In this document: positions 5,336 through 59,888 of the stretch, piece by piece
Position numbering within the stretch: position 1 is the first letter of the stretch
How the letters are laid out: each line of letters starts with the position of its first letter
Virus record (IMG/VR): IMGVR_UViG_3300043411_000921
Coordinates: 177,400-241,399 of that record
Length of the DNA stretch: 64,000 nt
Reading direction: 5' to 3' (one strand)
Translations under genes and position numbers: made by a program
The notes under the pieces: model-generated
What the model saw: only the letters and a program-made list of their open reading frames with translations
Told to the model about the DNA's origin: nothing
Databases searched by the model: none

Positions 5336-6106
5336 TTAGCTCGTTGAGGATGATCCTACGCTACCACCACCAGAAGGAACACCGCCACCATTATCTGGAC
5401 CAGAGTTGCCAGCCCTTGGAGCAGCAGGATAATCACCTTCAACCTGCTTCTTCGTCTTGGCTGTAAGATCAAAGTCACGCTCCAAAATATTCACCATCTC
5501 TTTAGCAAGTCTTGGCGAGTAGTTCTTTGAAATGTAAAACATTGCTCGATTTAGAATCAAGGATTTTGGATCAATGAGTGTTTGATAGTTGTTCACAAGC
5601 CTAGCAACGCCTTCAGCAAACTTCCTGATGTTGATTTTTGGAACGGGAACAACTTCTGGGGGATTGCTTTCAGTGTCGTCTCCTCCATCGTCACCGCCAC
5701 CAAACGGATCATCTCCACCACCCATGTCCATATCACCAGCATCATCGACAGGTGGTTCTGGTGGAGCTTCTTGCTCAAACAAGAACTTTCCCATCGAGAA
5801 CAAACGTTTTCCTTTTTTCCTTTCGGTCAATGGGGGTGTTTGAATGTTGTCTTTGACTTGTGCAGGATCAACAGGAAGTGCCCCATCCGTTTCCGGCATA
5901 TCCAGAGGGACTGACTCTCTTTCAAACTGCATGAGATACTTGTCAATCTTCTGATCAACAGAAGCTTCTGTCTCTGACAAGGAATCAGAAACACTGGGAA
6001 GCTGAAGAATCTGTTCTGGGCTGGAGACATAGGGCTTTCCATCTCCACCACCCTCTTCCTGTTCTCTCAACAAGAACTCGCTGAAACGTTTCTTTCTCAT
6101 AATCAA
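5336..6106 (-). CDS. acidic low-complexity protein, putative internal head protein
   Basis: FLLREQ and FLFEQ protease-site-like motifs; Gly/Asp/Pro tracts. Confidence 0.6.
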   Translation of the reverse strand: MIMRKKRFSEFLLREQEEGGGDGKPYVSSPEQILQLPSVSDSLSETEASVDQKIDKYLMQFERESVPLDMPETDGALPVDPAQVKDNIQTPPLTERKKGKRLFSMGKFLFEQEAPPEPPVDDAGDMDMGGGDDPFGGGDDGGDDTESNPPEVVPVPKINIRKFAEGVARLVNNYQTLIDPKSLILNRAMFYISKNYSPRLAKEMVNILERDFDLTAKTKKQVEGDYPAAPRAGNSGPDNGGGVPSGGGSVGSSSTS

Positions 6107-6918
6107 AGGATCCTTCCACCAAGAACTTCAACTGGAGGAGATGATTGTGGCAATCCAACGCTCGTCTCCTTCTCATTTGAAACAACAGCTTGGACAGAGT
6201 AAAGCTGGTGGAGCTTCGCCATCTCAGCAATCAACATTCTCATTTCAACAACATTCCAATTGATTTCTCGCATGGAGCGATTGAGATATTCAAGCTTCTC
6301 TCCTGGGAAATCAAGGAACCAAGCGTGGTGCCATGTGTCAAGAACCAGCACTGGAATTGCCATCAATGGAAGATGAAGGGTATGACCTTCAACAAAAGTG
6401 TTGAAATAACGTTGTTTGAACGGATCGAAGTAACAAACAGCCCAACCTTCTCTGGACGCCATTCCGCAAGCTCTGAAATCCAATTGCCACTGGTCGAAGG
6501 TTCCCCAATCCCTTGAAAGACGCATAAAAGGAATGCTGTCAGCACGAATCTCGGAGTTCAAATCTCCCGTGTTGGTGAACAACAACTCGTGGAACTTCAC
6601 TCCGTTCATGTTGTGAGTCTCATCAATCTTCAACCTTCTGAACTCTGAATCGTTTGGGTTATCTGCATCTGTCTTTGGAACAGAATCCAGCTTCGCAGAA
6701 ATTTTGTTGTGACTTGTGACGTAGCTGTTATACAGCTTTTCGTGGTTTTCCTTTGTTGTGGGGGATGAAACATCGCCCTTCAAAATAAATGAACGAGGCA
6801 TCAACACAGCCGCTTCTGAAACAACAGCTTTTGCCGCTTGTGCTACCTTTCCATCCAAAACTGTTCCAACAGCTTCTCGAATGATCTTCTGGAGATCTTT
6901 TGCATTGAGGGTCGTCAT
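6103..6918 (-). CDS. Fe/Mn superoxide dismutase-like protein (ChrC/SodF-like) with N-terminal leader
   Basis: H(EKLY..YV), HELLF, WGTFDQW, GWAV, PVLVLDTWHHAW, INWNVVE. Confidence 0.85.
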   Translation of the reverse strand: MTTLNAKDLQKIIREAVGTVLDGKVAQAAKAVVSEAAVLMPRSFILKGDVSSPTTKENHEKLYNSYVTSHNKISAKLDSVPKTDADNPNDSEFRRLKIDETHNMNGVKFHELLFTNTGDLNSEIRADSIPFMRLSRDWGTFDQWQLDFRACGMASREGWAVCYFDPFKQRYFNTFVEGHTLHLPLMAIPVLVLDTWHHAWFLDFPGEKLEYLNRSMREINWNVVEMRMLIAEMAKLHQLYSVQAVVSNEKETSVGLPQSSPPVEVLGGRIL

Positions 6919-6924
6919 GTGTTC

Positions 6925-7953
6925 TTACTTCTTCTTCCTTGATCTTACAGTCTCTGTAAATAGACCAGAAAGGGGTGCATGAGCATCATCATCCAATCCA
7001 AGCCTGTCTGCAATGTTCAGCATTCCTCTATCTTCCGCAGCATCCCCAGCCCTTGAAACTCTTGTGTCTCCGAGGGAAGGGAACACCCCCTGATAACTCG
7101 GACCCGACTCCCCAAGAGGGAACAGGATTTCTCTTATTGATTCCCCTTTGGATCCCTCTTCTGGTAATGTTCCACTAGACAACATCCCTGACAACTTTCT
7201 CATCGGGTTTTCTCGTGTGTTCTCCAAGAAGACGTAAGCGAGGGCATCACACGTCACGGATCCTTTTGCGAGCACCTCTTGTTGATATTCGTAGGTGTCC
7301 TCCCCGACCTCCAGGTACTTCGCAGCCTCAAACATGTTGAAAAAGAAGCTGTTTTCCTCGGTCTTGCACCTTCCAAGGACAACAAATCCCTTGGGAATAT
7401 CACCTTCCATGCGAACCTGACCAAAAAGCTTGGGCATGGACTCTTCCCTCCTGGACCAACTGGTGATATTATTCCCGGCTCTAGGTGACATAATAGCGCC
7501 ACGAACGACTCCTTCCTTACCAGGAGTCGTCAAGCCTGTTAGACGCCTCAGATAATCCTCCTGGATGCCAAAGAGAACCCTCCAGGCATATCCCTCTCTC
7601 ACCTGAAAGAATTTCTTGTACCAACCCTGCTCCTTCATCTTCCACATCAGGTCAACCATTTTTTCCAGGCCATCCCTGTTGTTCCATGAATAGTAGTTGC
7701 CAAGAGCAGCAATCAACCTCTTTTCTTCGGGAGAATCCTCTTCCTGAATATTTTCCTCGTAAACGTTCTTCCTCATCCACCCAAAAAGATATTCCCCAAA
7801 AGGTGCGTCTTTCGGAGCTTCTGGTGGAGGAGAATCCTTCACAACAGCAACCTTCTTTTTTGGTTTGGGTGGCAGCCAAGGCTTGTCTGGATCAAACTCC
7901 CAATCATCCCATCCGTCACTTTCCCATAAAAACCTTGAAATTCTAGGCGTCAT
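6925..7953 (-). CDS. putative R-S-E clade ADP-ribosyltransferase-like protein
   Basis: AWRVL ... ITSWS ... YQQEVL in the order of the R, S-x-S and Q/E-x-E motifs. Confidence 0.45.
   Translation of the reverse strand: MTPRISRFLWESDGWDDWEFDPDKPWLPPKPKKKVAVVKDSPPPEAPKDAPFGEYLFGWMRKNVYEENIQEEDSPEEKRLIAALGNYYSWNNRDGLEKMVDLMWKMKEQGWYKKFFQVREGYAWRVLFGIQEDYLRRLTGLTTPGKEGVVRGAIMSPRAGNNITSWSRREESMPKLFGQVRMEGDIPKGFVVLGRCKTEENSFFFNMFEAAKYLEVGEDTYEYQQEVLAKGSVTCDALAYVFLENTRENPMRKLSGMLSSGTLPEEGSKGESIREILFPLGESGPSYQGVFPSLGDTRVSRAGDAAEDRGMLNIADRLGLDDDAHAPLSGLFTETVRSRKKK
7148..7175 (+). repeat. co-oriented motif (family B), copy 1
   Basis: TTGGATCCCTCTTCTGGTAATGTTCCAC. Confidence 0.8.
7471..7575 (+). repeat. 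family A element, copy 2 (inside the ART-like CDS)
   Basis: TAGGTGACATAATAGCGCC at 7482; GATAATCC-TCCTGGATG at 7559 (offset 77). Confidence 0.6.
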
Positions 7954-7958
7954 CGAAA

Positions 7959-7964
7959 TAACTA
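7959..7964 (-). promoter_or_regulatory. late promoter motif TAGTTA, probably leaderless
   Basis: 5 nt before the ATG at 7953. Confidence 0.6.
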
Positions 7965-7998
7965 GAATCCCTCAAATACCCACGCCACACTCGTTCCC

Positions 7999-9168: not shown

Positions 9169-9542
9169 CAACAACTGAAGATTGGTCATTCAAACCAGGA
9201 GACATTTTCATTATCCCCGCTTCGCATTCATCTGATTGGCAGAATCTATACGACAACATTGGTCGGTACTCTGGCAGCAAATACTTGCAGTTGACCTATC
9301 CTGCTGAGACTCGTCAACAGCCAATCCTTTCCGAAATTGAGATTGATGAACTTTGTTTCTTCTTCAACACCAGAACCCTTGGTCCGAATGGGAAAATCGT
9401 CTTTCTAGGCTTCTCACAGAAAAACCCAGAGACAATGGGTTTGTTCATCAACTCAGAAGGAGCAGTGATTGAAATTGAATTGCTGTTTTTCGAGGAAGAT
9501 GTTGTTGGATATCTCCAGAAAATAGAAGTGGAAAGTGATTAA
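9165..9542 (+). CDS. paralog family protein 1
   Basis: FKPGDIF ... KIVFLGFS..P.T.GLFINSEG..EIEL shared with neighbours. Confidence 0.75.
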   Translation: MTTTEDWSFKPGDIFIIPASHSSDWQNLYDNIGRYSGSKYLQLTYPAETRQQPILSEIEIDELCFFFNTRTLGPNGKIVFLGFSQKNPETMGLFINSEGAVIEIELLFFEEDVVGYLQKIEVESD

Positions 9543-12945: not shown

Positions 12946-13238
12946 GCAAGTTTGATAAATCTGCGTCTGATCAAGACCTGCTCCAGCAGCCTTTCAGAAG
13001 AAGCAGGAGCATCAAACTGGAGTCTTGCAAGTGAAGCATCAATGTCTTCTTTGATCACTCTAACATCAGGAAGAACGGAGCGAAGTTCTTGCTGGAGAGC
13101 AATGAAGTCTCTATGGATGTCTTCTCTGCGAGCGTGACTTGGGTAATGCTTCTCAAAGAGATTCCCAGGTTTTTGTTGCTTTCTCTCTGATGGATCTGGA
13201 TGGAATTCAGACTGAAGTGGTTTCAGGTGTGATCTCAT
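12942..13238 (-). CDS. hypothetical protein
   Basis: ATGA-coupled ORF. Confidence 0.6.
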   Translation of the reverse strand: MRSHLKPLQSEFHPDPSERKQQKPGNLFEKHYPSHARREDIHRDFIALQQELRSVLPDVRVIKEDIDASLARLQFDAPASSERLLEQVLIRRRFIKLA

Positions 13239-13588
13239 TTGTTTTTCTTGCTTTCTCCGATAAGAGTTCTCAGCTTCATAACATTTCCAATCGTGTTTCT
13301 TGTGGTTCTGAGATAACCAATCAAAGTCAACACGAGCCGCTTCCTTTCTGAAGCAGCTTGGTTGTGAAGGAAGTTCTCAGTCAAAAGACTTTCCCCTTCA
13401 TCAGCAAGCTCATCTGCTGTTGCAAAGGTTTCATCAAGAAAGGTTTGAACCTTTTTGACAAATGCACTGAGTTTCTTGTCGCCGTCTTGAGCACCAGTCA
13501 ACAGAAACTCATCTGCATCCATTGCTTCAAGAAGGATTTTTTTCACCACAGCTTTTGTGAGTGGATTGGGTGTTGATTTATCGGTCAT
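13235..13588 (-). CDS. hypothetical protein with KKILLE leader motif
   Basis: ATGA-coupled ORF. Confidence 0.65.
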   Translation of the reverse strand: MTDKSTPNPLTKAVVKKILLEAMDADEFLLTGAQDGDKKLSAFVKKVQTFLDETFATADELADEGESLLTENFLHNQAASERKRLVLTLIGYLRTTRNTIGNVMKLRTLIGESKKNK

Positions 13589-24268: not shown

Positions 24269-24637
24269 TCAGTTCATTCTTCTTGTTCTTGCCGCTGGAA
24301 TAAATGGTGAGGAGGAAGCTTCTTTGTTTCCCTTCTCAAGGTTTGAAAAGAATTGATCAGTCTTTTCTTCTCCCTCTTTCCTCTCTTGGGCGAATACACC
24401 AGCAACTTTTTCAGCGGTTGTTGGTTCAACTCCCAGCTTGGCAATATCTTGTGGGGAAGGAGATTTCATTGCTGAAAGCAGGGCTGCTTTGATCTTCTCT
24501 CTCACATCTGGAGAGAGTTCGGGTGCGGCTTTCAAAGCTCTGTTGGCAGCAACCATTGTGTTGAACTTGAACAACTCAACAGGGTTGATTGCTCCCCTCA
24601 GTGCTTCTTTGATGATTTGTTTCAAAATTTTCTTCAT
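24269..24637 (-). CDS. hypothetical, putative internal head protein
   Basis: Leader MKKILKQIIKEAL. Confidence 0.65.
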   Translation of the reverse strand: MKKILKQIIKEALRGAINPVELFKFNTMVAANRALKAAPELSPDVREKIKAALLSAMKSPSPQDIAKLGVEPTTAEKVAGVFAQERKEGEEKTDQFFSNLEKGNKEASSSPFIPAARTRRMN

Positions 24638-25984: not shown

Positions 25985-26239
25985 TTACTTCTTCTTGGCA
26001 GGAGCAGCGGGTTTTGCTGGGGCTGGCTTGGCAGCTTTGGCAGCAGCGGAACCACGACGATAACCTTCACGGAAAGCCGTCGCAACAGCTTCTTGGAGTT
26101 GTTCCTCCATCTTGGCATCACCACATTCTTCCACTGGTTCAACTGGGGAACCTTCGGTGACTGTGTGGTTCATCTCTGCCATTGCTTCTTCGGCTGCTTC
26201 CCGAATAAGAGTCTTCAACTGTTTGACTGTAATCTTCAT
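25985..26239 (-). CDS. small putative internal head protein with Ala/Lys/Pro-rich tail
   Basis: MKITVKQLKTLIREA leader; GGAGG RBS; TAGTTA at 26276-26281. Confidence 0.75.
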   Translation of the reverse strand: MKITVKQLKTLIREAAEEAMAEMNHTVTEGSPVEPVEECGDAKMEEQLQEAVATAFREGYRRGSAAAKAAKPAPAKPAAPAKKK

Positions 26240-26997: not shown

Positions 26998-27609
26998 TCA
27001 AGCCCGTCCCAATTTCTCTTTAAGCTCTTTGATTTTTTCTTGGTATCTGGATTCCAGTTTCAGCAAGATGTTTTCTTGAATATTTTTGATGATTCCTTGC
27101 ACGGATCGCCCCCAGGTTGCATCAACCCATTTGGGTGCGCTCAACGCTGCATGATTCAGTTGGGCTTTAAGACTATCAATCCCTTCTGTGTTCATCCCAA
27201 GCTTTCTTGCCAAATTCTGCAATGCAAGCATGTTGCCGTTACTAAAACCGCCAGCATCGTTTGAAAACGCTCCAAGCCATTTATTCCATTGACTCTCATT
27301 AAATTCCGATCTTGGCGTTTTTGCCAAGTTATAGGTAAGAACATTATACAACGAATTCAGGTTGAGAGCTTTGTTTTCTTCTCCGCTTTTTTCCTTGTAT
27401 TGTTGGTAGGCATATTCCAAGCTGGCCAATTCATCCTTTTCTTTTCCCCGCATACCAACACCAGCAGCCACCTTGTTCCCAAGGCTAGAAAAAATACCTT
27501 CATTGATGAATTCGCCTTGAAAACCAGCTTTCAAAAACTCCTTCATTTCCTGGCGAAAAATAGCAACCCTTAGACTTTCAGAAATTATTTGGTTCAAACT
27601 CTTTTTCAT
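26998..27609 (-). CDS. hypothetical, putative internal head protein
   Basis: MKKSLNQIISES and FINEG motifs; TACTTA upstream. Confidence 0.7.
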   Translation of the reverse strand: MKKSLNQIISESLRVAIFRQEMKEFLKAGFQGEFINEGIFSSLGNKVAAGVGMRGKEKDELASLEYAYQQYKEKSGEENKALNLNSLYNVLTYNLAKTPRSEFNESQWNKWLGAFSNDAGGFSNGNMLALQNLARKLGMNTEGIDSLKAQLNHAALSAPKWVDATWGRSVQGIIKNIQENILLKLESRYQEKIKELKEKLGRA

Positions 27610-27738: not shown

Positions 27739-29706
27739 TTATAGGATTGACATGTCGAGAACTGTGACCGTTGCGTAGAAGTCGGAGCGAACCATCTTCT
27801 TTCCGTAACGGGTCATGATTCCCTTACGAGGAGTGAAGTCCTCTTGACCGTAGATCACAGGGGTCAGGATAAGAGGAACGTAAGGAGCGTAGATGTATCC
27901 AGACTCCAGGAAGGTTGAACCCTTGAGGCCCAGAAGAATCTTGTTCACTGGGAAGTAAGGGTCAATGAAGACCGAGTAACGACCGTTCACTGTTCCTGTG
28001 GCTTCTGCACCGATGCTCATGTTGTCACGAACTTGTCCATCGCTGTCGATTTTGTAGTTCGCACGGTAAGCAACTGTTGCTTCGAGGATTGTGCCGACTT
28101 CTGGAGAGCACACGATGAAGTTGCCAGATCCGCGAAGAGTCTTCTTGTGGATGACGTTTGCAGCGTCGGTGATGGTTCCGATAAGTGTCTCGTACCATTC
28201 ACGGGATGTTCCAGCGAATTGTGGACCTGGGTAAACAGTGCTTGTGCGAGCAACTTCTGTTCCGGTTTGCTTGTTAACAAAGCGGCCTGGAGCGCGGCTC
28301 CAGAAGTAGTTGGCAGCAGTTGCCTGAGTCAACAGGTCGTTCAAGATTTCACGGTCAATATCCAGAGTGATCATTTCACTGAGGATGTTTGTGAGTTCTG
28401 CTTCCACGTCGAGGGAGTAGAACGCTGTGAGGTCTTGAGCCATTTCTGGGGACCAACGAGCGCGCAGCTTCCTTGTGGTTGCAGTCACAGAAACGCTGTC
28501 AATCTTGATGTCAACGTCTGGGATCCTTGGGCTTGCATCAACCGCGAAGTTAGATTCGAAGCTTGGGATTGTCAGAGCGGAACCATCGGAGTTGACGGAG
28601 AGTTGGTCAGCAATTGGGCAAGAAGCTGTGATTGCGGAGAGACCACCACCGAGACCTGCGTTTGGAGTTGCACCCACTGGAGGTGTTCCACCTTGAGGCA
28701 GAGCCATCGCAAACATCAAGTGCGTTCCGTTAAATGGATCAGGAACGAAGGTAGAAGCTGTGCCGTTATCTGTCCAGTTACCACGCTTTGTAAAGCGGCG
28801 GAAGTTCAAAACTCCTTCACCTTGTTGGTAGGTTTGTGGAACGGAAGTGAAGTTGGAGCTAGAAGCACCCAAACCAACCACTGCGATTTGCTCAACGGAG
28901 TTGAGGTCGGCACCGTTAACGGCTGTTGTGAGAGCAGAAGCGGAAACCACCATGAAGGTGAAGTCCAGAGCGTTCACATCAACGTCTGTGGAGAGGGTAG
29001 GATCGTAGTCAACGAAACGTGCGTTGTAACCAACAAAGCCTGCGGAAGCGGACACGGAAGAACCGGAGAGCCAGGAAGTACCGCCGCTCCATGAACCCAG
29101 GATGACTTCATCTTGAGCAAGAACGCCACGAACGTGAACCTTGGAATAACCGGAACCAATCAGGTTATATTGACCACCAGCAGCAAGCGAACCGCTTGTG
29201 CGGATTGTGGAACCAGATGGGTTGGTGTAGATTGATTGGCCACGACCGTATGTCGCTGCGCCGGGATCAGAACCCACTGCAAATTGGTTTGCGCTTGCAC
29301 CGGCATCACCACCGACATAGGAGCCGTAGGTGTAGTCCAGATAGAAGAGCAGACCAGAAGGAAGGCTCATTGGCTGGACGGAGACAATTTCATTTGCAAC
29401 GAGGCCAGCAAACACTCTACGAACGATTGGGAATGCCACGTTCGTGAAACCAGCAACCTGACCAGAAGAGGCAAGGCCAGCTCCACCTGTGGACAGGGAG
29501 AGGCTTTCGTTCAACATTGAGCTTCCGCCCTTGAGAACTTCGACTGCTTGGTTTTCAAGCAGTCTTGCCATCTTTTGACGACCTGCAACGGACAGACCTT
29601 CGAGAAGACCTGTTTTGTTCCATTTGTTGACGATTCTTTCGTCTGCGGTGTTGGCTGTCCTTTGGATACCTTCTGCCAACTGTGAAAGTGTCAGATTTCT
29701 TGACAT
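27739..29706 (-). CDS. major capsid protein (T4 gp23-like) with large insertion
   Basis: KW.KTGLLEGL, LLENQ, PIVRRVF, VQPMSLPSGLLFYLD, TRKLRARWSPEMAQDL, YAPYVPL, FTPRKGIMTRY. Confidence 0.96.
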   Translation of the reverse strand: MSRNLTLSQLAEGIQRTANTADERIVNKWNKTGLLEGLSVAGRQKMARLLENQAVEVLKGGSSMLNESLSLSTGGAGLASSGQVAGFTNVAFPIVRRVFAGLVANEIVSVQPMSLPSGLLFYLDYTYGSYVGGDAGASANQFAVGSDPGAATYGRGQSIYTNPSGSTIRTSGSLAAGGQYNLIGSGYSKVHVRGVLAQDEVILGSWSGGTSWLSGSSVSASAGFVGYNARFVDYDPTLSTDVDVNALDFTFMVVSASALTTAVNGADLNSVEQIAVVGLGASSSNFTSVPQTYQQGEGVLNFRRFTKRGNWTDNGTASTFVPDPFNGTHLMFAMALPQGGTPPVGATPNAGLGGGLSAITASCPIADQLSVNSDGSALTIPSFESNFAVDASPRIPDVDIKIDSVSVTATTRKLRARWSPEMAQDLTAFYSLDVEAELTNILSEMITLDIDREILNDLLTQATAANYFWSRAPGRFVNKQTGTEVARTSTVYPGPQFAGTSREWYETLIGTITDAANVIHKKTLRGSGNFIVCSPEVGTILEATVAYRANYKIDSDGQVRDNMSIGAEATGTVNGRYSVFIDPYFPVNKILLGLKGSTFLESGYIYAPYVPLILTPVIYGQEDFTPRKGIMTRYGKKMVRSDFYATVTVLDMSIL

Positions 29707-29761: not shown

Positions 29762-31912
29762 TCATTTTGTGGACTTCTTCACACCAGCAAGCAATTGCCA
29801 GCGGGAAGTATCGAAGCTAGGTTCAGCCGCTTGTGCTCCGAGCATTCTGGAGCCTCTCTCAGCAGATTCGGACAGGGTTGTTGTGCCCTTGGCTTTGTCC
29901 AAAACTCTGGAGATGCGGTTGTAAACTTCCTTGGCTTCTTGGATTGTTTGGGCCTTGTCGAGGTACTCAACGATTTTGCGCTTTTGCGCCCCGGACAAAT
30001 TGTCACGCACAAACAGTTTGTTGACATACAGAGACCTTGCAGTCAGCACTTGGGTTTCAGCCAGTTGACCACGAAGGATCTTGTTTTCTTGCAATGCGGA
30101 AACAGCTTTTGGTGTTGCTTTGCCGTTCTTCTTGCCCTTGGCGGACTCAGCAAGCATTTCGTCGGATTCTGGTTCTTCACCTTCGCCGTGTTCGGAACCT
30201 TCTTCTCCACCCATGTCGAGATCAATGTCGTCCAGGCCACCTTCTGCACCAGTGGAATCCATTGGTTGACCATCGACAGAAACATTCACGTTTTCAACGC
30301 TGCCACCGTCAACACCATCAAGGTCAATGGTGAGAGAGAGATGATCAGCAATGTCACCTTCGGAATCATCCATTGAAACTTCTGCTTCCTCGCCACCAGG
30401 AGCTTCGACTTCTTCCTCGGCAGCAGCAGCAGCAGCAAGTTCGGCTTGTTCTTTGAGAGCCTTCAGGCGAGCACGAATCTTCTTGGCTTCAGCAACAACT
30501 TCTTCATCGGAGATTTCGAGCATCATGTCATCTCCATCAGAAATGACTTCTTCGCCCTCACCTTCTTCGCCCTCACCTTCTTCGCCGTCGTAACCCATCT
30601 CAGCCATCATTGCGGCAACTTCCTCTTCCAGTTGTTCCAGAAGAGATTCACCAGAAGGCTTGCCCGGCCAGTCTTTCTTTTCCTTGGTTGGGAAAGGAGC
30701 CTTCTCAGCTTCTGCCTTTACTCCGGCTGTGTTTCCAGAAGACTTCTTGGCGTGTTCGTCAGAACCACCTTCGGATTCACCCGCAGGGCTAACTTTGCCT
30801 ACGTTGTGCTCAAACCCTTCTGCCCCTTCGAAAAGTTGACGAAGCAGAGCTTTTACTGATGTGTTTTGTGTTGCCTTAGACATTGTTTTTGTACCCTTTA
30901 CAAGCGGAATTGCGAGATAACTATTGATAACAGCGAGGTTTTCCCGCAGAAGACCAATGCGGTGCTCCTCAAGACGAAAAGTGCTGTTGGAAATCAACTT
31001 CGCTTTGTTGAGACTTTCCAAACCTTCATAAAGACGGAACAACTCTTTTTCTTGAGCCTTCACTGCTCCTTCTGACAAAGGAGAATTTCCTGGTTTCCTA
31101 AGAGCCAAGATTTCTTCTTCCTTTGCTTCGAGCATTCCTTTCAAGGCTTCGTAAGCCTCACTCATCATCGGAGCTTGTTCCCCTGGAGCAGTGACATCTT
31201 CCGCATTTGCAGCAATCGGAGGTTTCGCTGCTTGTTCTTTGATGAACTTGGCAACAACCTTATGGATCTCTGCCAGAGGACTTGGGGCGGGAAGCTCTTC
31301 TTCGGGTGATGGAGGAGGAACGGCTGTGTCCATCCCTGGAACGGGTGGAGTTGCTGGGGGAGGCATTCCTTCTGTTGCAGCAGCCATAGGATCCGCAGCA
31401 GGAGGCGTTGCATCCATTCCTGTTGGTGGAACTTCCGAAGTTGCTGTCATTGCTGGATTGGTTTCTTTTTGGAAGAGAGCATCCACGGGAATGACAATTT
31501 GTTGTTCCCCAGCGGGACCAACGTCAATCTTTCCAAGAACGGGAGAACCAGGGGAAGCGATTGGAGGAGAAGCTGCTGAAACGGCTGGTGGCATGGAAGG
31601 CATTCCAGTTCCAGACATTGGAGGTGGAGGTGCAATTTCCGCAGAGGTTGGTGTTGGGGAAATTGGTCCTGTTGCACCAGCATCTGGGCTTGGGGCAGGA
31701 GGAGCGGGAGGAGGGAGTTCTTCTGCTGGGAGTGATTCCTCTTGTTCCAGAATGATCCCTGAAATTTCCTTGTCGATCATTTGTTTGATGACTGGGGCAA
31801 CGGCTTCAAGCACGGCTGCTTTTGCTTCTGCTGTTGCTGCCTCACGAAGTTTTCTCGCTTCAATCAAGGCTTCTTGAAACAGTGGGGTTGTTGTTGACAT
31901 CATGTTCTCCAA
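29762..31912 (-). CDS. prohead scaffold/core protein (gp22-like)
   Basis: Acidic and Pro-rich, coiled coils, many LxE sites, C-terminal RWQLLAG; directly upstream of the MCP. Confidence 0.75.
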   Translation of the reverse strand: MENMMSTTTPLFQEALIEARKLREAATAEAKAAVLEAVAPVIKQMIDKEISGIILEQEESLPAEELPPPAPPAPSPDAGATGPISPTPTSAEIAPPPPMSGTGMPSMPPAVSAASPPIASPGSPVLGKIDVGPAGEQQIVIPVDALFQKETNPAMTATSEVPPTGMDATPPAADPMAAATEGMPPPATPPVPGMDTAVPPPSPEEELPAPSPLAEIHKVVAKFIKEQAAKPPIAANAEDVTAPGEQAPMMSEAYEALKGMLEAKEEEILALRKPGNSPLSEGAVKAQEKELFRLYEGLESLNKAKLISNSTFRLEEHRIGLLRENLAVINSYLAIPLVKGTKTMSKATQNTSVKALLRQLFEGAEGFEHNVGKVSPAGESEGGSDEHAKKSSGNTAGVKAEAEKAPFPTKEKKDWPGKPSGESLLEQLEEEVAAMMAEMGYDGEEGEGEEGEGEEVISDGDDMMLEISDEEVVAEAKKIRARLKALKEQAELAAAAAAEEEVEAPGGEEAEVSMDDSEGDIADHLSLTIDLDGVDGGSVENVNVSVDGQPMDSTGAEGGLDDIDLDMGGEEGSEHGEGEEPESDEMLAESAKGKKNGKATPKAVSALQENKILRGQLAETQVLTARSLYVNKLFVRDNLSGAQKRKIVEYLDKAQTIQEAKEVYNRISRVLDKAKGTTTLSESAERGSRMLGAQAAEPSFDTSRWQLLAGVKKSTK

Positions 31913-34808: not shown

Positions 34809-36893
34809 CTATTCGCTTGAATTCGTAGGATCCTGTTCCCCAGCCAACCCAAGCAACTCGTTCAACATATTCTCTTCTTCTGTTCCCTCTCTTTGGATCC
34901 CTTTCTGGTTATCCTCCACACCCTCAGACATAATCACCTCATTCCCAGGGGTTTTAACACTGAGAACTTCCGCCAAACCCCTCAAGGAAGACTGCAACTC
35001 TTTTGGAAGGCGCCTTCCGATTCTCCTGGCTCTTGCTTCCTCTTGTTCCAACATGAATTTCCGGGTTCCAGCAATGTCGTAGGGATCCTTGGAATATCTG
35101 TTGCCAGTAATATCCAACATGCTCTTGAAATCAGGAAGAGAGAGAGCACGACTGCCGGTGAATTCTTTACTACCCCCTCTATCGCGCTTAAATGCCTTAT
35201 CCAGGCTGGGCGTTGGGTTGAACCTAATTGGGGTGCTTCCACCCTTTTGAGCGCCCTGGATAATCCCCTGGGTGCCTTTACGGGCCTCCTCCCTTGCCTT
35301 GGCAATTGCCGCTTGGTGTTTCCTCTCCATCTCCTCATTCTCAATTTCCAAACTCCTGACTTCTTTTTTGTCGGGAGCAAAAGGAGAGGTTGGGACTTCA
35401 TAGTTCGCCTTGTCGAAAATATCAACGCTGCTTTCCATACTCTTGTCAAACACCGGATTCTCCAGGATCATCTTCAATTCAGCAATCCTGAGTTGGTCTT
35501 GTTTGGCTTCTTGCCAGATGGTGTTGATCTCTTCTGGACGAAGACCAAGAATCTCTCTCTGAATCCAAGGGAAGGAAATGATTCCGGTTTCTTTTCCAAT
35601 ATCAAGAGCCTTGGAGGCTGTTTCAATCTTGCTGGAGATGAGGGCAAGCTTTTGTTGGACGGCAACCGTGGAAGGGTTGGAGAATTTCAGTTCAAAGTTG
35701 AGGAGGTCATCTCCACTGAAACCAAGAGAATAGAGATGGATCATTGCGAGCTTGTCGAGTTCGGCAACGATGATTTTTTGAAGGTGAGAGATGGTTCTGG
35801 AGAAGCGAATATCTTCTTGGGCGAGTGTTGCTTTACTAGAGATGGCTTCGTCGTATGTCAGATAAGCTCTTGGAACCATCAAAGCGGCAATGAGTTTTTT
35901 GTGGATGAACTCGACATCCTCGATTGCCGTTGCGTTTGTAGCTCCTGCCAAAGATTCAATTTTTGTCAAACTGTTTGGTCTTGCTGGGAGGTAGTAGTCC
36001 TCATCAATTGCAAGAGGGTTGTAACGAAAGTCTTGTCTGCCTTGTTGCTGTTCAATGACAGAAGCACCTTTCATTCCCTCTTTGACAGCTTCCATATAAG
36101 AAGGAATGTCGTTCGGGTGAACAGCAGAAACATCAACGTAGAAGACTCTTCGTTCTGGTGATCGAACAAGTCGATAAACCAACATGGAGTCTTCTAACAT
36201 AACGAGCTGACGGAATGGCCTCCTGGCACTCTCCAGGAAGCTTGTTCCATAAGGAAGGAACAAGTCATTTCCCAGAATTCTAAAGTGAAGCATCTGCCAG
36301 TTTTCGAGATACTTCCCTCCTCTGGAGATGAGTCTAAACCTCACGGCATAAGGATCGTTTCGATCAAACCCTTCTTCTCTTTCCACTTCATTGACAGGAA
36401 GAGGTTCGCAGTTGATTACTCCATAATTCGGAACAACTTCAACATACATGAAGTAGTCGCCGTTCTTGACAAGGTTCCTGATCATTCTTCTTCCATTGAA
36501 CTCAATGTTCATCACGTCATAGAAGAGTTCTTCCAGGGCTTTTTGAACCTGTTGGTTGTCACTGTAAATGTGAAAGGTGTTTCCGTTTTCATCGGAGGCA
36601 CAGCTTTCATCGGCATAGATGTTTAGTGCGGTTGCGATGTCTGGGAAACTCTCCATTTCAGCAAACTCGGCATATCGACTCATGCGATCAAGAACGCCGT
36701 AAGCGCCAAGAACAGAGAATGGCGAAGCTTCTTTTTTGAATCCAGACGCACCGTAATAACCAAGGTTGTTTTGGACGACTTGGTTGTCGTAGTAGTTTTT
36801 GTAGTCTTGTCCTTTTACTTTACGTCTGATTGCTGGACCTGATCGAAAGAGTCTTGTGAGACGTTGGTAGAAGGTTTTTTCTTGCTTTGCCAT
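34809..36893 (-). CDS. portal protein (T4 gp20-like)
   Basis: YGTSFLE.AR...QL.MLED.MLVYRLVRSPERRVFYVDV, EDYYLP, LAQEDIRFSR. Confidence 0.95.
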   Translation of the reverse strand: MAKQEKTFYQRLTRLFRSGPAIRRKVKGQDYKNYYDNQVVQNNLGYYGASGFKKEASPFSVLGAYGVLDRMSRYAEFAEMESFPDIATALNIYADESCASDENGNTFHIYSDNQQVQKALEELFYDVMNIEFNGRRMIRNLVKNGDYFMYVEVVPNYGVINCEPLPVNEVEREEGFDRNDPYAVRFRLISRGGKYLENWQMLHFRILGNDLFLPYGTSFLESARRPFRQLVMLEDSMLVYRLVRSPERRVFYVDVSAVHPNDIPSYMEAVKEGMKGASVIEQQQGRQDFRYNPLAIDEDYYLPARPNSLTKIESLAGATNATAIEDVEFIHKKLIAALMVPRAYLTYDEAISSKATLAQEDIRFSRTISHLQKIIVAELDKLAMIHLYSLGFSGDDLLNFELKFSNPSTVAVQQKLALISSKIETASKALDIGKETGIISFPWIQREILGLRPEEINTIWQEAKQDQLRIAELKMILENPVFDKSMESSVDIFDKANYEVPTSPFAPDKKEVRSLEIENEEMERKHQAAIAKAREEARKGTQGIIQGAQKGGSTPIRFNPTPSLDKAFKRDRGGSKEFTGSRALSLPDFKSMLDITGNRYSKDPYDIAGTRKFMLEQEEARARRIGRRLPKELQSSLRGLAEVLSVKTPGNEVIMSEGVEDNQKGIQREGTEEENMLNELLGLAGEQDPTNSSE
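34893..34919 (+). repeat. family B motif, copy 2 (inside the portal 3' end)
   Basis: TTGGATCCCTTTCTGGTTATCCTCCAC. Confidence 0.8.
35178..35282 (+). repeat. family A element, copy 7 (inside portal)
   Basis: TAAATGCCTTAT at 35189; GGATAATC-CCCTGGGTGCCTTTA at 35266 (offset 77). Confidence 0.65.
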
Positions 36894-36910: not shown

Positions 36911-37279
36911 ATGCCTTTATCAGAACTGGCAAAAGACAGAATTGCATACGTTGCTGCGTATGTGCAGGATTCTATTACCGACTGGTTTGTTTTGAAGATT
37001 GAGATTCTAAGAGCATTCGGAAGGTTTGACAGGAAGAAGTTGGGAATGAGCAGGAGACATCCAAGCACGGAGAAGCTGTTTGTCAACGAGGCAGACAGAG
37101 AAATCATGGAGTATTGGGAGCTACTTACGGGGATCAAACCCTTTGTAGACGAGACAAAACTGCATGATCCCAACTGGGTTTACAGGCCATCGGGATGGAG
37201 ACTAGCGGAGATCAATGAAAAACGTAAAGCAGAGCGGGAAGCAGCCAAGTCTTCAAAAAATCATTCTGGAACAGGATGA
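36911..37279 (+). CDS. hypothetical protein divergent from portal
   Basis: ATG at 36911, 5 nt after TACTTA (36900-36905). Confidence 0.6.
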   Translation: MPLSELAKDRIAYVAAYVQDSITDWFVLKIEILRAFGRFDRKKLGMSRRHPSTEKLFVNEADREIMEYWELLTGIKPFVDETKLHDPNWVYRPSGWRLAEINEKRKAEREAAKSSKNHSGTG

Positions 37280-38327
37280 CTACGACTTTGGAGATTATAG
37301 CGATTACGGTTCTGGTTACGGTGGAAGCTATACTGACTCTTCCACACAAGGCTCTGGAAAAGGTCTTGCAAGAATAACAAGCAGAGAAGCTCTCCCAGGA
37401 CTTCTCATGTCTCCAGTTGTTGATGTTGCCAACGCCTTCAAAAAGTTCGGAGCAAAGGTGGGAATAAAGGCTGCTGGAATTGTCGTTTCAACTCTGACTC
37501 AAGCAATTGCTGCTGTTATGCCATTCAACAACCCTCTGTCCGTCGATTATGTGGACAGAAAGTTCCGATTCTGGGACACAAAAGCCCTTGGTTTCATTGA
37601 AAAGCAGTTTGAAAAGGAAACTGCTTTGATGAGGCAGGGCTGGGAAACGTTCAAAACAGATTTCTGGGGCTTGGGATTTGTTGCGTCACCTTATGATATG
37701 ATTGCCGCTGCCATCACCGCAGAAAAAGGAATAGATGCCAGTTTGTCGGTGCTGAACGTCATCACTGGTGGATACGTTGACAAGATGATTGCAAAGGTCT
37801 TGAGGGCGAAGGGTGATCCTGGAACCTTGAAAGGTTATATCCAACGCCACAGTTGGGGACAACGGGCTCAAGAGTTTTCTGATAGCACCTATTACTCTGA
37901 TGATGACTATAACCCCTTCATCAGAGAATCCTCCAGCCAAGACAACTTTGACTCCATGTCTCTTCCAGACAAGATCAATCTCTTGAAAAAAGAATTGGGA
38001 GAAGAGGAAGCCAACAAAGTTTTTGGTGCTGTTGCCAATGATGTGATGAAGAGCCCAGAGGGAGAGGAAGCAGAAAAGAAATGGGTCTCCAGGAACCTGC
38101 CATTGGTCGCTGGGGGGCTTTTTACGGCCCTCGACAAAGATTTGAAGGCAGGAGTAGTTCCAGGTGTTTCTCTGCCACAGATAAAGCTCTGGAAGCGATC
38201 TGCGGGGTCTTTGGCAGAGAAGGCAGTAACAGATGTCATTGCCAAGTCAAAAGTGAAGATTACTCCTCCAGACGGTGCTCTTGAGGCCGTAAAAACCTTT
38301 GTGGACAGGACTGTAACCAAACCATAA
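37215..38327 (+). CDS. hypothetical, putative internal head protein
   Basis: SLQKIILEQ leader; 370 aa. Confidence 0.7.
   Translation: MKNVKQSGKQPSLQKIILEQDDYDFGDYSDYGSGYGGSYTDSSTQGSGKGLARITSREALPGLLMSPVVDVANAFKKFGAKVGIKAAGIVVSTLTQAIAAVMPFNNPLSVDYVDRKFRFWDTKALGFIEKQFEKETALMRQGWETFKTDFWGLGFVASPYDMIAAAITAEKGIDASLSVLNVITGGYVDKMIAKVLRAKGDPGTLKGYIQRHSWGQRAQEFSDSTYYSDDDYNPFIRESSSQDNFDSMSLPDKINLLKKELGEEEANKVFGAVANDVMKSPEGEEAEKKWVSRNLPLVAGGLFTALDKDLKAGVVPGVSLPQIKLWKRSAGSLAEKAVTDVIAKSKVKITPPDGALEAVKTFVDRTVTKP
38100..38204 (+). repeat. family A element, copy 8
   Basis: TGGGGGGCTTTT at 38111; GATAAAGC-TCTGGAAGCGATCT at 38188 (offset 77). Confidence 0.65.
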
Positions 38328-52695: not shown

Positions 52696-53970
52696 TCAAG
52701 GGACAGCTATCATTTTTCTAGTGGCTAGGTCAAAACCCTTTGGCAATTTTGTCTTAGCGTCGAATGTTGCTTCACGCAGCCCAATCGCATCTTCCAGGTT
52801 GCTCCCAGTAAAATCAACATCGTAAAACGCAGCACCAAAAAAATCAACATCCTGCAAATAAGCATTTCTCATGTGAACTCCTGAAAAACTTGAATGTTTC
52901 AAACTTGTGGCAAACAAGTCAACAGAGTTAAGAACACATTGAACGAAGCCACAAGCGTCCATTTTTGCTTCCCTAATCTTGGCACCCCCAAGTTGGCAGC
53001 GTGTGAACAAGCCTTTGAAAAGCTGGATTTTTGAAAGGTTTGCCTTTGCGAACCTGCAATTTATGAAGTTTATCCTTTGAAGGTTGGCGCCTGTGAAATC
53101 TGATCCTGAGAAATCCACGTCTTCAATGATCATGTTTTTTTCACTGAGGCCAATGGTTTTCAAGATTTGCTTGTTTTCCATGTTGCGGAAATCTGATCCC
53201 TGAAAGTCAAGAAGCTTTTTATCTTTCTCGAACAGAGAGGTGATGTGGCCCTTTGGAGCATCAAGAATGCTTGGTTTGTTATTCTTCTCCACGACACTTA
53301 CAATTTCGACTTGGGCTGTGTTGAAGAACACGGCTTGGTTTGGTTCGAGGTGATGGATAATTTGAAAACCATCATCAACAACCCCATCATATCCAAGCAC
53401 CTTCCAGAGAAGGTAAGACCATTTTCCGGTTGGGCCGCCACCACGATCTTTCTTCTGTTCGGGTTGAAAATCTGGATCAGCAGAATCGGCACCCGCCAAC
53501 AATCTTGTAATGTTCCAGATCATTGAACCGTGAAGATTTTGATTGTCTCTTGCCCCTCTTCTTGCATACTCAATCGCTTTTTGTGAAAATCCCCAAGCGA
53601 CAAGTTTTTCTACATCTTGCTTGAGGTTTTCCGCGGAATGAGTCGTGAAATCCAGCAATCTCGCTGTTGGTTTTGGTCTGATTACAACAGCATAAGGTCT
53701 GTTGATCGCAAACCTCATCATCTTCTTTCGATCAAGGAAGTAAGCATAGAAGCCAATAGGTGTCTTGTACTGATTCTTGAGATACAAACCCATCCTGGGA
53801 TAATCTGAGAAGTGAACAAACAAGTTCTTGTCTGTCTTGTTTTGCTGTTCAAGTGCAGCAAGTTGTTCTTGCCAAGGAGTTGGTTTCACTCCCAGTTCCC
53901 TCATGTGCCTGGAGATTTCAAGAAGAGTGAGAGACCTGATAAGAGGGGAAAGAGAATTGCTGCTGCTCAT
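52696..53970 (-). CDS. ART-like N-terminal domain fused to pentapeptide repeats
   Basis: FVHFS..PIGFYAY..GYDGVVD..EPNQAVFF; C-terminal VDFSG/SDFTG/ANLQR/ANLSK repeats. Confidence 0.7.
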   Translation of the reverse strand: MSSSNSLSPLIRSLTLLEISRHMRELGVKPTPWQEQLAALEQQNKTDKNLFVHFSDYPRMGLYLKNQYKTPIGFYAYFLDRKKMMRFAINRPYAVVIRPKPTARLLDFTTHSAENLKQDVEKLVAWGFSQKAIEYARRGARDNQNLHGSMIWNITRLLAGADSADPDFQPEQKKDRGGGPTGKWSYLLWKVLGYDGVVDDGFQIIHHLEPNQAVFFNTAQVEIVSVVEKNNKPSILDAPKGHITSLFEKDKKLLDFQGSDFRNMENKQILKTIGLSEKNMIIEDVDFSGSDFTGANLQRINFINCRFAKANLSKIQLFKGLFTRCQLGGAKIREAKMDACGFVQCVLNSVDLFATSLKHSSFSGVHMRNAYLQDVDFFGAAFYDVDFTGSNLEDAIGLREATFDAKTKLPKGFDLATRKMIAVP

Positions 53971-58681: not shown

Positions 58682-59024
58682 TGTGTGTTTGGTCCGTTTC
58701 TTCTGGAAGGGGAGTTACCTGGAAGTTCTTGTCTTTGACAATCCAACCCGTTCGAGTATCCCCATATAGACAGTTGTAATAGAAATGACCATAAGAATCC
58801 ACCACTTCCCTCAACAACACAAAAACTTCCGAGAATCCCTTCAATCCCCACGGTTGCACTGCCCCAGTGAGCGCGGTTCCAAATTCCGTCGTCGTTGAAA
58901 TTATGGTTTCATTTTTCTTCAAACGCGATTCCAGCAAAAGTTCCAAATCAGGATAAACAGCAACAAACACTGGCTTCCTCGTGTTTCTTCTGTTTTTCAG
59001 TGTGCAAATGGATCCTGGTTTCAT
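58644..59024 (-). CDS. hypothetical protein (SH3-like)
   Basis: MKPGSIC ... CLYGDTRTGWI. Confidence 0.6.
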   Translation of the reverse strand: MKPGSICTLKNRRNTRKPVFVAVYPDLELLLESRLKKNETIISTTTEFGTALTGAVQPWGLKGFSEVFVLLREVVDSYGHFYYNCLYGDTRTGWIVKDKNFQVTPLPEETDQTHNANKSQDSESTV

Positions 59025-59044
59025 GTTCCCTAGCTAGACTCATC

Positions 59045-59290
59045 ATGTTCGTTGCTGAATCTCAGAGATACTATGACCACACCTTCCAGGAAAGCAAGAC
59101 GATCCTAAGAACCCAATATGACTCCCTTCTTTGCTCTCTTCTGGTTATCTTCCACAACGGCTCCCAATACCTCTATTTTTCAGTACCTCCAGAGGTTCAC
59201 CAGTCCCTCCTCGATTCCCCAAGCCCAGGAAAATTCTTCCACTCCAACATCCGAGGAAAATTCAGGCACGAACGTCAAACCAATATCTAA
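59045..59290 (+). CDS. KTSC domain protein
   Basis: S..I....YD....LLVIFHNGSQYLYFSVPPEVH..LL.SPSPGKFFH.NIRG. Confidence 0.85.
   Translation: MFVAESQRYYDHTFQESKTILRTQYDSLLCSLLVIFHNGSQYLYFSVPPEVHQSLLDSPSPGKFFHSNIRGKFRHERQTNI
59134..59155 (+). repeat. family B motif, copy 5 (inside KTSC gene)
   Basis: CTCTCTTCTGGTTATCTTCCAC. Confidence 0.7.
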
Positions 59291-59294
59291 CCCC

Positions 59295-59888
59295 ATGAAA
59301 CTAAGCCAAATCCTCTTCACCAACGAAAATTCTGGTGACTTTTCAGGGGCTGGAACCTTCCAAGGTGGACCATTCGGCTTTGGAAACAAACATCAACTCG
59401 CTGCACATGAACCCTGGGAAGGTCTCGAAGATCAGGAAGAAACAGATGAAGTCTTTCTCAAAGAAAGAAGTCCGTCCGACATCTTGTACCGCGATCTCCC
59501 AGGATTTCCCAGGATGAACACCTTGGCAAAACCCGTAGACCACATTCCCCATTCTCCATCAGACGAAGAGAGATACAACATCCCAGATCTCATTCCCCCA
59601 GGAAGAGATGGAGAAGCTGGAGAACACTTCGGCTTTGGACCTCTTGAAGAAGATCCAGCCGTTCTTGCTCGCCACACCGATTGGATCAAAAAAGAAACCG
59701 AGTCGGAGCACGCTGGATATACCTCCAGTGAAATTGCAACCAACTCAGTTCCAACTCATGGTGGAAGCATGGGAGTTATTGCCAAACCCATCAAGCACAC
59801 TCCTGGTCCCGTTGACATCTACAAAAAAGGTTCCGGTCCCGGTTATTCCCTCGGAGAATCTCTTCTCCTCAGCAACCTCCTCTTCTAG
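59295..59888 (+). CDS. hypothetical, putative internal head protein
   Basis: Leader MKLSQILFTNE; FLKE and LEE sites. Confidence 0.65.
   Translation: MKLSQILFTNENSGDFSGAGTFQGGPFGFGNKHQLAAHEPWEGLEDQEETDEVFLKERSPSDILYRDLPGFPRMNTLAKPVDHIPHSPSDEERYNIPDLIPPGRDGEAGEHFGFGPLEEDPAVLARHTDWIKKETESEHAGYTSSEIATNSVPTHGGSMGVIAKPIKHTPGPVDIYKKGSGPGYSLGESLLLSNLLF

Follow-up and report, generated by a model that had tools for sequence, protein, structure and literature searches.

In bacteriophage T4, internal proteins are packaged in the head by means of a short N-terminal peptide. The first ten residues of its internal protein IPIII are sufficient for encapsidation, residues 4 and 7 being important for targeting and residues 8 and 10 for processing, and the diverse internal proteins found in T-even phages have only this capsid targeting sequence (CTS) in common (PMC9026906, PMC3012670). 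In the jumbo phages phiKZ, 201phi2-1 and SPN3US, many head proteins, ejection and inner-body proteins among them, have N-terminal propeptides that gp21-related proteases likewise cut after the Glu of a short motif, sometimes with redundant sites in a single propeptide (PMC9026906). Among eukaryotic viruses, the chlorovirus PBCV-1 carries in its particle a late-expressed Cu/Zn superoxide dismutase (SOD), A245R, which is thought to lower superoxide early in infection (PMC7019647). Here we describe a family of short N-terminal leaders shared by otherwise unrelated proteins in a 64,000-nucleotide stretch of IMG/VR record IMGVR_UViG_3300043411_000921 (the whole stretch is referred to as the window), one of which precedes an SOD-like enzyme.

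The window is the last quarter of a single viral contig of 241,399 bp, in which 343 genes were called for this analysis, and has a G+C content of ~45%. Near-identical sequence is present in freshwater, wastewater and estuary metagenomes, and for this reason the contig is regarded as the genome of an uncultured phage. Megablast of the sheath region against phage records gave no match, and the capsid protein is only 33–42% identical to those of the closest isolates (cultured phages), while at least 598 related capsid genes are found in IMG/VR. The phage is an uncultured freshwater jumbo myovirus that is distantly related to T4. We consider that the leaders are probably capsid-targeting and processing propeptides of the T4 type in a distant clade, with presence in the virion, targeting, cleavage, retention in the head and injection all proposed by analogy with T4. 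In what follows, positions are those of the window unless stated otherwise; where prefixes are used, W denotes window positions, G positions in the whole genome, and L001–L010 and the like related loci. The term hh.E stands for two hydrophobic residues, any residue and Glu, and an arrow marks a predicted cut.

The strict form of the leader has the consensus MK-h-T-K-x-x-L-K-x-h-h-K/R-E-A/S and occurs on exactly six proteins of the 241-kb genome, of which five are encoded within the window:

6103..6918, minus strand: Fe/Mn superoxide-dismutase-like protein, 271 aa (Pfam Sod_Fe_C, E 1.1e-14), leader-profile E 0.005

24269..24637, minus strand: basic protein of 122 aa after the neck gene, leader MKKILKQIIKE↓A, N-terminus MKKILKQIIKEA, leader-profile E 3.5e-5

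25985..26239, minus strand: 84-aa protein with leader MKITVKQLKTLIRE↓A, N-terminus MKITVKQLKTLIREA and a basic Ala/Pro/Lys-rich C-terminal tail; the best leader-profile match, E 2.2e-8

26998..27609, minus strand: 203-aa protein just downstream of the capsid gene, leader MKKSLNQIISE↓S, N-terminus MKKSLNQIISES, identified with the leader profile

32616..33266, minus strand: core-type protein of 216 aa with strict leader …RSEFKAVVKE↓SLRELISEG ending at Glu27, relatives-only profile E 6.9e-7

Genome 136510-136803, outside the window: the sixth strict-leader gene, 97 aa, N-terminus MRLTVKKLKEMIREA, identified with the leader profile

When the proteome was ranked with a leader profile built from relatives only, these six proteins took the top six places, with E values of 2e-8, 6e-7, 7e-7, 3.5e-5, 0.005 and 0.28, the next protein standing at 1.4. 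The weakest of the six, the leader of W26998 (E 0.28), improves to 3e-4 when own sequences are included in the profile, and it is identical to the W24269 leader at 7 of 10 positions. When all six frames of the genome (338,448 residues) were scanned, no further credible leader emerged; the six proteins made up 6 of the top 8 matches, the weakest of them having an i-E value of 2.5 alongside chance matches at 1.1 and 2.6. The leader is predicted to be helical, with hydrophobic residues spaced i, i+3, i+4. Pairs of leader proteins are among the most identical in residues 2–11 of all 58,653 protein pairs, and the same codon is used at only 41 of 68 identical residues; this synonymous divergence indicates that the peptide has been kept by selection and does not reflect recent duplication.

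The preliminary description of this stretch had taken a basic/hydrophobic helix ending in (I/L)-x-E, at the start of many unrelated open reading frames, as the mark of probable injected cargo. All twelve of the N-terminal strings that it quoted are found in the sequence. The bare motif does not hold up as a marker, since it is no more frequent at N-termini than elsewhere in the proteins: [LI]xE occurs in 30.6% of windows of the first 30 residues and in 15–30% of later ones, and hh.E in 20.1% as against 15–22%. An approximately two-fold N-terminal excess appears when a following small or polar residue is required (hh.E[ASGQN], 11.1% compared with about 5.5%). What stands is the stricter leader on its six proteins. 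Five of the twelve quoted examples (those starting at 6918, 24637, 26239, 27609 and 33266) carry it; five more have another family-conserved N-terminal hh.E (7953, 6106, 13588 and 37215, and more weakly 59295), and for the remaining two (50231 and 53970), both with doubtful starts, a leader is unsupported.

In an unsupervised comparison of the first 30 residues of all proteins, in which pairs were scored by their best ungapped 9-mer and those similar beyond residue 35 were excluded, high-scoring N-terminal pairs were about three times commoner than pairs of internal or shuffled windows. The resulting 9-mer similarity graph recovered a leader cluster made up of W24269-24637, W26998-27609, W32616-33266, W6103-6918 (the SOD-like protein) and G136510-136803, which also pulled in three leaderless proteins (G29383, G79201 and G68546). 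The 84-aa protein W25985-26239 was too short to enter this test, yet it is the best leader match overall. A vectorised motif search of the N-termini by expectation maximisation, under the zero-or-one-occurrence-per-sequence model, did not converge on the leader and settled instead on PGxLYRL, which belongs to a family of small paralogous proteins. At least 15 open reading frames of this family (about 90–125 aa) are found at window positions 9165-9542 and genome positions 18230-64813, and their N-terminal P-G-x-L-Y-R-L is both the strongest motif found by expectation maximisation and the largest cluster of N-terminal similarity.

The restriction of the strict leader to N-termini is seen in related phages. 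A matrix made from the six leaders was scanned over 1.07 Mb comprising 80 related loci (822,194 positions), and at a cut-off of at least 14 bits it gave 53 matches. In 43 of these an in-frame ATG lies no more than 5 residues upstream, compared with an expectation of 10.1% (binomial P about 1e-33). Orthologues of the core-type protein encoded just after the protease account for 28 of the 53; the remainder fall into about 18 clusters that are unrelated beyond the leader, at least one of them being a spurious opposite-strand reading frame. In contrast to the leader profile, this position statistic and the unsupervised clustering are fully independent.

The leader genes of the relatives form arrays in the interval between the protease and core genes (for example three to four genes in L007 and L008) and, in L001 and L010, between the capsid and neck genes. 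W26998, W25985 and W24269 occupy the same slots. The small leader genes are hypervariable among the related phages: the three of them have 0–1 orthologues in the 80 loci (none for W26998 or W24269, and a single one, in L001, for W25985), as against 18–80 for the flanking structural genes. Outside the leader, these proteins are dissimilar to each other and to the core protein. Two of the small leader proteins are basic (pI 9.3–9.6, the value for mature W24269 being 9.6), and two have basic C-terminal tails. The sixth gene, G136510-136803, adjoins a baseplate-hub homologue (genome 135150-136052, PHROG E 2.6e-21) and is not in the head module.

The 216-aa core-type protein is the conserved member of the set. 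Its gene follows immediately on that of the protease, as it does for the 28 orthologues in related loci, and in most of these relatives the protein starts directly with MKLTKSELKAIVKE↓CLVEILAEG. An internal start that would place the leader of the 216-aa protein at its very N-terminus was considered and rejected, the codon being CTG. Low-complexity stretches with a strong bias to Gln and Pro are present in this protein and in a 234-aa protein encoded at 12217-12921.

Two observations on the related loci are added here. At L008:4059-5312, a 417-aa frame has an N-terminal leader and a second in-frame leader-like segment (MKVNKRQLQEMVRLA) near residue 190, and could represent either two fused leader modules or a mis-joined gene pair. 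At L007:12714-13633 and 18291-18860, three proteins have shared starts (…RFQKLAGILKE↓S, …RFQKLAGILVE↓G and …RLQKLAGI…), which suggests that there are additional leader types in the clade.

Within the window, the small leader genes lie in a minus-strand structural module of the T4 type that was recognised by family searches and includes the following genes:

34809..36893, minus strand: portal protein of the gp20 type, 694 aa (Pfam Portal_T4, E 1.1e-64; PHROG portal)

33268..33888, minus strand: prohead core protease of the T4 gp21 type, 206 aa (Pfam Peptidase_S77, E 8.8e-26)

29762..31903, minus strand: acidic, helical low-complexity protein of 713 aa with N-terminus MMSTTTPLFQE↓ALIE↓A, noted for its composition and position

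27739..29706, minus strand: major capsid protein of the gp23 type, 655 aa (Pfam Gp23, E 1.4e-75)

24647-25906, minus strand: neck-like protein, 419 aa (family searches)

The protease matches the structure of T4 gp21 (PDB 5JBL) with an E value of 4.8e-15, and pairwise alignment with T4 gp21 shows that GELxH (His79) and PGxSSRxLGSL (Ser132/133) are kept; His79, Ser132 and Ser133 are invariant among 29 orthologues. Its own N-terminus reads MTTPNNKTLLLKE↓V, in which LLLKE aligns with the LLIE of T4. In an N-terminal alignment of relatives and T4 gp23, capsid residue Glu67 (MLNE↓SLSLSTGG; codon 29506-29508) is at least 80% conserved and falls on the T4 gp23 cleavage site LTE↓AEIGG. The capsid protein is therefore predicted from its sequence to be cut after Glu67 on maturation, and the cleavage context that this implies, hh.E followed by a small residue, matches the ends of the leaders. 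The 713-aa protein is encoded directly upstream of the capsid gene, contains many h.E sites and is found, with a conserved h-Y/F-x-E-A at its N-terminus, in 74 of the 80 related loci. No family match to it was found in PHROG and Pfam searches; its position and composition suggest that it is probably the main scaffold.

The SOD-like enzyme is one of the carriers of the strict leader. Its residues 50–228 align by phmmer with residues 19–197 of the Fe-SOD of Aquifex (PDB 1COJ; E 3.7e-23); this alignment covers both SOD domains, whereas the Pfam search recovers Sod_Fe_C alone. The family comprises 162 matches at E <= 1e-5, on contigs of up to 290 kb, and the best 120 clusters were listed. The metal ligands His59, His110, Asp194 and His198 are 99–100% conserved in ~115 full-length homologues that were aligned, the first of them being assigned by invariance as the pairwise alignment is off by one residue at this point. 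Every member of the family has an N-terminal extension that cellular SODs lack. In the protein encoded here it is 35 residues long and contains two hh.E↓A sites, IIRE15↓A and VVSE35↓A. The second is the better conserved: 101 of 104 members have a Glu exactly six residues ahead of the domain, and in 94 of 104 the next residue is Ala. The first hh.E↓A, at residues 12–18, is found in 64 members, and the linker between the sites is variable. In the AlphaFold2 model (mean predicted local distance difference test score, pLDDT, 84.6) residues 1–45 form low-confidence helices outside the fold, and Glu35 ends the second of these. SOD genes co-occur with a T4-type head module on 3 of 5 related contigs. 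The preliminary proposal of an SOD-like enzyme with a leader is supported by the strict profile match, the intact metal ligands and the near-invariant E↓A before the domain. Metatranscriptome contigs over 4200-8100 amount to three short pieces from one activated-sludge RNA run, two of them on the SOD gene, which is too few to speak for transcription or timing. No report of a capsid-packaged SOD in a bacteriophage was found in the literature library searched.

The SOD gene is the second of a three-gene operon whose other members are:

6925..7953, minus strand: ADP-ribosyltransferase (ART)-like protein, 342 aa, N-terminus MTPRISRFLWE↓SDGWDD, proposed on fold matches and motif pattern; first gene of the operon

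5336..6100, minus strand: 254-aa protein, N-terminus MRKKRFSEFLLRE↓QEEGGG, downstream of the SOD gene, noted for its family conservation

A word-based homologue search with the ART-like protein returned only its own cluster, and an exhaustive search was needed to find its 117 relatives. In an alignment of 40 of these, Tyr112, Arg125 and Glu226 are invariant and Trp166 nearly so, giving the pattern AYR…SWT…ExE. In the AlphaFold2 model (pLDDT 79) these motifs lie on strands 122–130, 163–167 and 226–230, where the R, S-x-S/T and E-x-E motifs of ADP-ribosyltransferases are located. The ART superfamily accounts for most of the top 50 Foldseek matches and all of the top 50 VIA-align rows, with weak scores (best E 6.4e-3, TM <= 0.47, Z 5.5), and an Atlas feature search also lists ART families. 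Neither this protein nor the 40 relatives gave a Pfam or PHROG match, and there was no PDB profile match. In the 78 relatives whose domain starts within 80 residues, hh.E is present in the stretch before the domain in 63, compared with 20.6±3.6 in shuffles; the strict type of leader is represented among them (MRITESQLRRIVR…). The 254-aa family behaves in the same way: among its 96 homologue clusters, 84 of 93 usable members have hh.E in the first 30 residues (17.2±3.7 in shuffles), usually as FLLxEQ followed by acidic residues and most commonly as FLLEQD or LLREQD.

Two ART-like enzymes with leaders had been proposed, and the window has only one ART-like gene, that of the protein just described. 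A second with a leader does exist outside the window, at genome 62080-62661, where a paralogue (profile E 1.8e-18) has the pattern VYRG…SWTT…EREV and starts MKLSEILFPNE. A protein encoded at the far end of the window begins in a similar way:

59295..59888, plus strand: 197-aa protein, second leader type MKLSQILFTNE↓NSGDFSG; weak

Its start is identical at 8 of 10 positions to that of the unrelated ART paralogue G62080-62661, which ties for the best N-terminal pair in the genome, and two orthologues retain the Glu that precedes [ND]xGD[FY]SG. The start of a 232-aa protein at genome 152872 is MKLYQFLFEN. Together, these MKLS and MKLY starts look like a second type of leader.

Packaging requires that a cargo protein be made together with the head, and the motif HTAGTTA offers a candidate means. 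It occurs 13 times in the window against an expectation of 4.6±2.2, a count reached in none of 100 shuffles, and genome-wide 14 of 22 sites lie no more than 100 nt upstream of a start on the same strand, mostly of structural genes. Sites in the window include the following, placed 12–77 nt upstream of the starts of the capsid, sheath, tube, neck and core genes, the 84-aa leader gene and the ART-SOD-254 operon:

7959..7965, minus strand: CTAGTTA, 12 nt upstream of the ART-SOD-254 operon

15964-15970, 22302-22308, 25913-25919, 26276-26282, 29752-29758, 32594-32600, 34800-34806 and 50537-50543: further HTAGTTA sites

The site upstream of the 84-aa leader gene W25985 reads ATAGTTA and is 43 nt from its start. 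The T4 late promoter TATAAATA is absent from the genome. From its placement HTAGTTA is a candidate late promoter, and its being common to the ART-SOD-254 operon and the structural genes fits with the co-expression that packaging would require.

The remaining examples of the preliminary description that were examined are these:

13235..13588, minus strand: 117-aa protein, N-terminus …KAVVKKILLE↓AMDAD, assessed by orthologue alignment

37215..38327, plus strand: 370-aa protein, divergent from the portal gene, N-terminus …SLQKIILE↓QDDYDFGDY, assessed from its homologues

49026-50255, minus strand: the reading frame described as nuclease-like (EILFLKEE); leader unsupported

52696..53970, minus strand: pentapeptide-repeat protein (RSLTLLEI; Pfam Pentapeptide, E 1.4e-16, residues 284–395); leader unsupported

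W13235 is below significance in the strict profile (E 1.6–4.2), and hh.E↓A/G is present at the aligned place in all 4 of the orthologues found, one of which starts MSKFKSLKQLVKEA and reads MSKFKSLKQLVKE↓A. In three homologues of W37215 the corresponding element is h-(h/x)-E-Q (LIEQ, VNEQ and LVEQ), followed by a stretch rich in Asp, Gly and Tyr; no family match and no Atlas lead was obtained for this protein. In the case of 49026-50255, the proposal of nuclease-like cargo is unsupported, as the frame has no family match in PHROG or Pfam and an uncertain start: EILFLKEE requires the longest possible start, the gene call made here begins at 50165, and the sole orthologue aligns from residue 28 only. 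RSLTLLEI similarly requires the ATG at 53970, an uncertain start, and for the pentapeptide-repeat protein there was no orthologue covering the N-terminus and no Atlas lead for the N-terminal domain. The small leader proteins and the 254-aa, 370-aa, 197-aa and 117-aa proteins had no PHROG or Pfam match.

The closest comparison is with the T4 CTS of IPI, IPII and IPIII. In the T4 record, ipII and ipIII begin MKTYQEFIAE↓A, gp22 begins MLKEQLIAE↓A, gp24 MAKINELLRE↓S, Alt MELITELFDE↓D and gp21 MNEPQLLIE↓T. Both systems have a short N-terminal peptide that ends in hh-x-Glu followed by Ala or Ser; the carriers in both are unrelated to each other, poorly conserved, small and often basic; and both have a gp21-family protease, head genes of the gp20 and gp23 types, and sites of the same format on the protease, scaffold and capsid proteins. 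They differ in that the consensus described here is not detectably similar to MKTYQEFIAE, that the leader has 11–15 residues (27 in the core protein) compared with 10, that at least two or three leader types coexist here, and that a conserved core protein also starts with the main type. In addition, the leader genes are inside the head-neck module here and scattered in T4, and the present system is known from its genes alone. The analogy with T4 drawn in the preliminary description is supported by the protease, the portal, the capsid site and the format of the leader, and not by sequence similarity to the CTS.

With T4 Alt, the packaged, gp21-trimmed and injected ART, the ART-like protein shares its place in a putative late operon, a short hh-x-Glu peptide (MTPRISRFLWE↓S compared with MELITELFDE↓D) and the Arg / Ser-x-Thr / Glu-x-Glu pattern of the R-S-E (cholera-toxin-like) ART clade. 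It is considerably shorter, with 342 aa compared with 682 aa, and it has no sequence match to Pfam ART families or solved ARTs, only weak fold matches (Z 5.5). The phages phiKZ, 201phi2-1 and SPN3US are jumbo myoviruses as well, and two sites within one extension are found in the SOD-like protein. Their motifs are of the S/A/G-x-E or AQE type and their protease is much more diverged, whereas in the present phage the protease is clearly of the S77 family and the capsid and portal are of the T4 type; genes for an inner body or a virion RNA polymerase were not seen in the window. As to PBCV-1 A245R, the same role is proposed for the phage SOD-like enzyme; the chlorovirus is a eukaryotic giant virus, its SOD belongs to an unrelated family (Cu/Zn as opposed to Fe/Mn) without loading by leader and protease, and packaging is demonstrated there and proposed here. 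The new elements of the present case are the consensus of the leader, the presence of several leader types side by side, and the putative passengers resembling SOD and ART.

On the T4 model, assembly would proceed as follows. The gp20-like portal would nucleate a protein core, around which the gp23-like shell assembles, and the gp21-like serine protease inside the prohead would cleave the proteins of core and shell after the Glu of hydrophobic-hydrophobic-x-Glu sites. The leaders would be the counterpart of the T4 CTS and propeptides. Their main type, which is a Lys-rich amphipathic helix about 11–15 residues long (27 to the Glu in the core protein), would make its carrier co-assemble with the core so that it is enclosed in the prohead, after which the protease would remove the leader at its terminal Glu; the SOD-like enzyme would have a second, better conserved site just before its domain. 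The mature proteins would then stay in the DNA-filled head and, on infection, exit along with the DNA; if they are no more than parts of the core, they would be degraded and expelled.

Several results weigh against the identification of the leaders as targeting propeptides. The leader profile gave E values above 0.5 on T4 ipI, ipII, ipIII, gp22, gp24, gp67, gp68 and Alt, so that the likeness to T4 is one of format and not of detectable homology. Bare hh.E has no genome-wide N-terminal excess, and a DNA primase encoded elsewhere in the genome starts MPSSIKQIILEN, which shows that chance, too, gives rise to the loose motif. For the leaders outside the strict set the evidence is family conservation only. 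The leader set of the relatives was collected with a matrix seeded from the six leaders of this genome, and the profile is to that extent not fully independent. In the core protein orthologues the residue after Glu is Cys in most relatives, which is absent from the T4 examples compared. The ART assignment is made from weak fold matches and the conserved R/S-x-T/E-x-E pattern with no Pfam match, and the second ART-like gene stands among small, early-looking genes with no HTAGTTA found nearby.

The alternative that survives best, though we judge it unlikely, is that the small leader proteins are not cargo. They would instead be diverged paralogues or accessory parts of the scaffold core, destined to be degraded and expelled, with the enzymes alone perhaps travelling as passengers; the shared N-terminal helix would be the piece that binds core, portal or shell. 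Such an origin would account for the leader being the N-terminus of the conserved core protein itself and for the small leader genes lying inside the head module. Several of the small proteins have many internal h.E sites, like T4 gp22, gp67 and gp68, and most of the core proteins of T4 are fragmented and exit the head (PMC9026906). Against this, the small proteins show no similarity to one another or to the core protein outside the leader, and the turnover of their genes, far faster than that of the structural genes, is what is expected of proteins that interact with the host. The basic character of the small proteins or their tails is reminiscent of DNA-associated internal proteins, and an apparently complete SOD domain, its metal ligands intact, carries this leader as well.

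We find it very improbable that the leader is an amphipathic helix with a different function, for instance in oligomerisation, in binding to the membrane where assembly occurs or in being recognised by the phage's Cpn60, that is left uncut and has nothing to do with the protease. The predicted helix with its regular hydrophobic spacing would suit such a role; moreover, the phage encodes a Cpn60 chaperonin nearby, and the N-terminus of T4 gp23 targets fusion proteins to GroEL (PMC3012670). Against this, the leader always ends in hh.E and a small residue, as at the T4-equivalent site of the capsid protein and the N-terminus of the protease. In the SOD family it is the E↓A junction, not the helix, that is the best conserved element, and the leader lacks a hydrophobic core of the length that a signal peptide or membrane anchor would need.

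Least credible, and disfavoured for the strict set, is the idea that there is no shared signal, only chance and the general composition of N-termini (Lys-rich second codons that favour translation, and a common hydrophobic-x-Glu): the internal frequency of [LI]xE and hh.E, the primase, the two of twelve examples that hinge on doubtful starts, and a generic profile from ART-family N-termini that was too degenerate to give a significant proteome match (E >= 0.09) all speak for it, and they are outweighed by the rank of the strict leaders ahead of all other sequence, with a gap of four or more orders of magnitude in E value for five of the six, by their confinement to N-termini in relatives, by an excess of hh.E over shuffles of 11–18 standard deviations in two independent families (ART-like and 254-aa), and by the near-invariant E↓A at a fixed distance from the SOD domain.

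Other features of the window are the tail genes of the structural module, a number of enzymes and a tRNA cluster:

15442-15933, minus strand: gp19-like tube protein (family searches)

15987-19013 and 19121-22264, minus strand: tandem tail sheath paralogues of ~1000 aa each (family searches), each roughly 50% longer than T4 gp18 (659 aa)

7999-9168: adenylosuccinate synthetase (family search)

13919-14788: protein with a histone-deacetylase domain (family search)

40142-41881: full-length chaperonin of the Cpn60/GroEL type (Pfam E 2.3e-64); T4 encodes the co-chaperonin gp31 only

43986-47129: single polypeptide with Mre11-like phosphoesterase and Rad50/SbcC-like ATPase parts (family search)

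48117-49046: UvdE UV endonuclease (family search)

56144-56953: sigma-70 region 2 protein (family search)

61045-63962: 22 tRNA genes within 3 kb, closing the contig

Injected phage proteins are weapons of the front line against the defences of the host, and they are known from only a few cultured phages. If the leaders are only core-assembly helices, they are an ordinary feature of head morphogenesis. If they are targeting propeptides, as we think probable, they would carry the capsid-targeting principle of T4 into a clade that is very distant, uncultured and abundant in the environment, they would offer a way to list the packaged proteins of this clade from sequence only, and foreign proteins could be loaded into non-T4 capsids with the leaders as natural tags. 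More tentatively, and with somewhat less than an even balance of evidence in its favour, it may be that a metal-competent Fe/Mn SOD and an Alt-like ART are packaged and injected by means of cleavable leaders throughout the clade, which on the same tentative reading would be one of widespread uncultured T4-like jumbo phages of freshwater and wastewater; leader profiles of this type could then reveal, from sequence only, every ejected protein of uncultured T4-like phages. In that event the chlorovirus virion SOD would gain its first counterpart in a phage, and the phage would arrive in its host with its own antioxidant and host-modifying enzymes.

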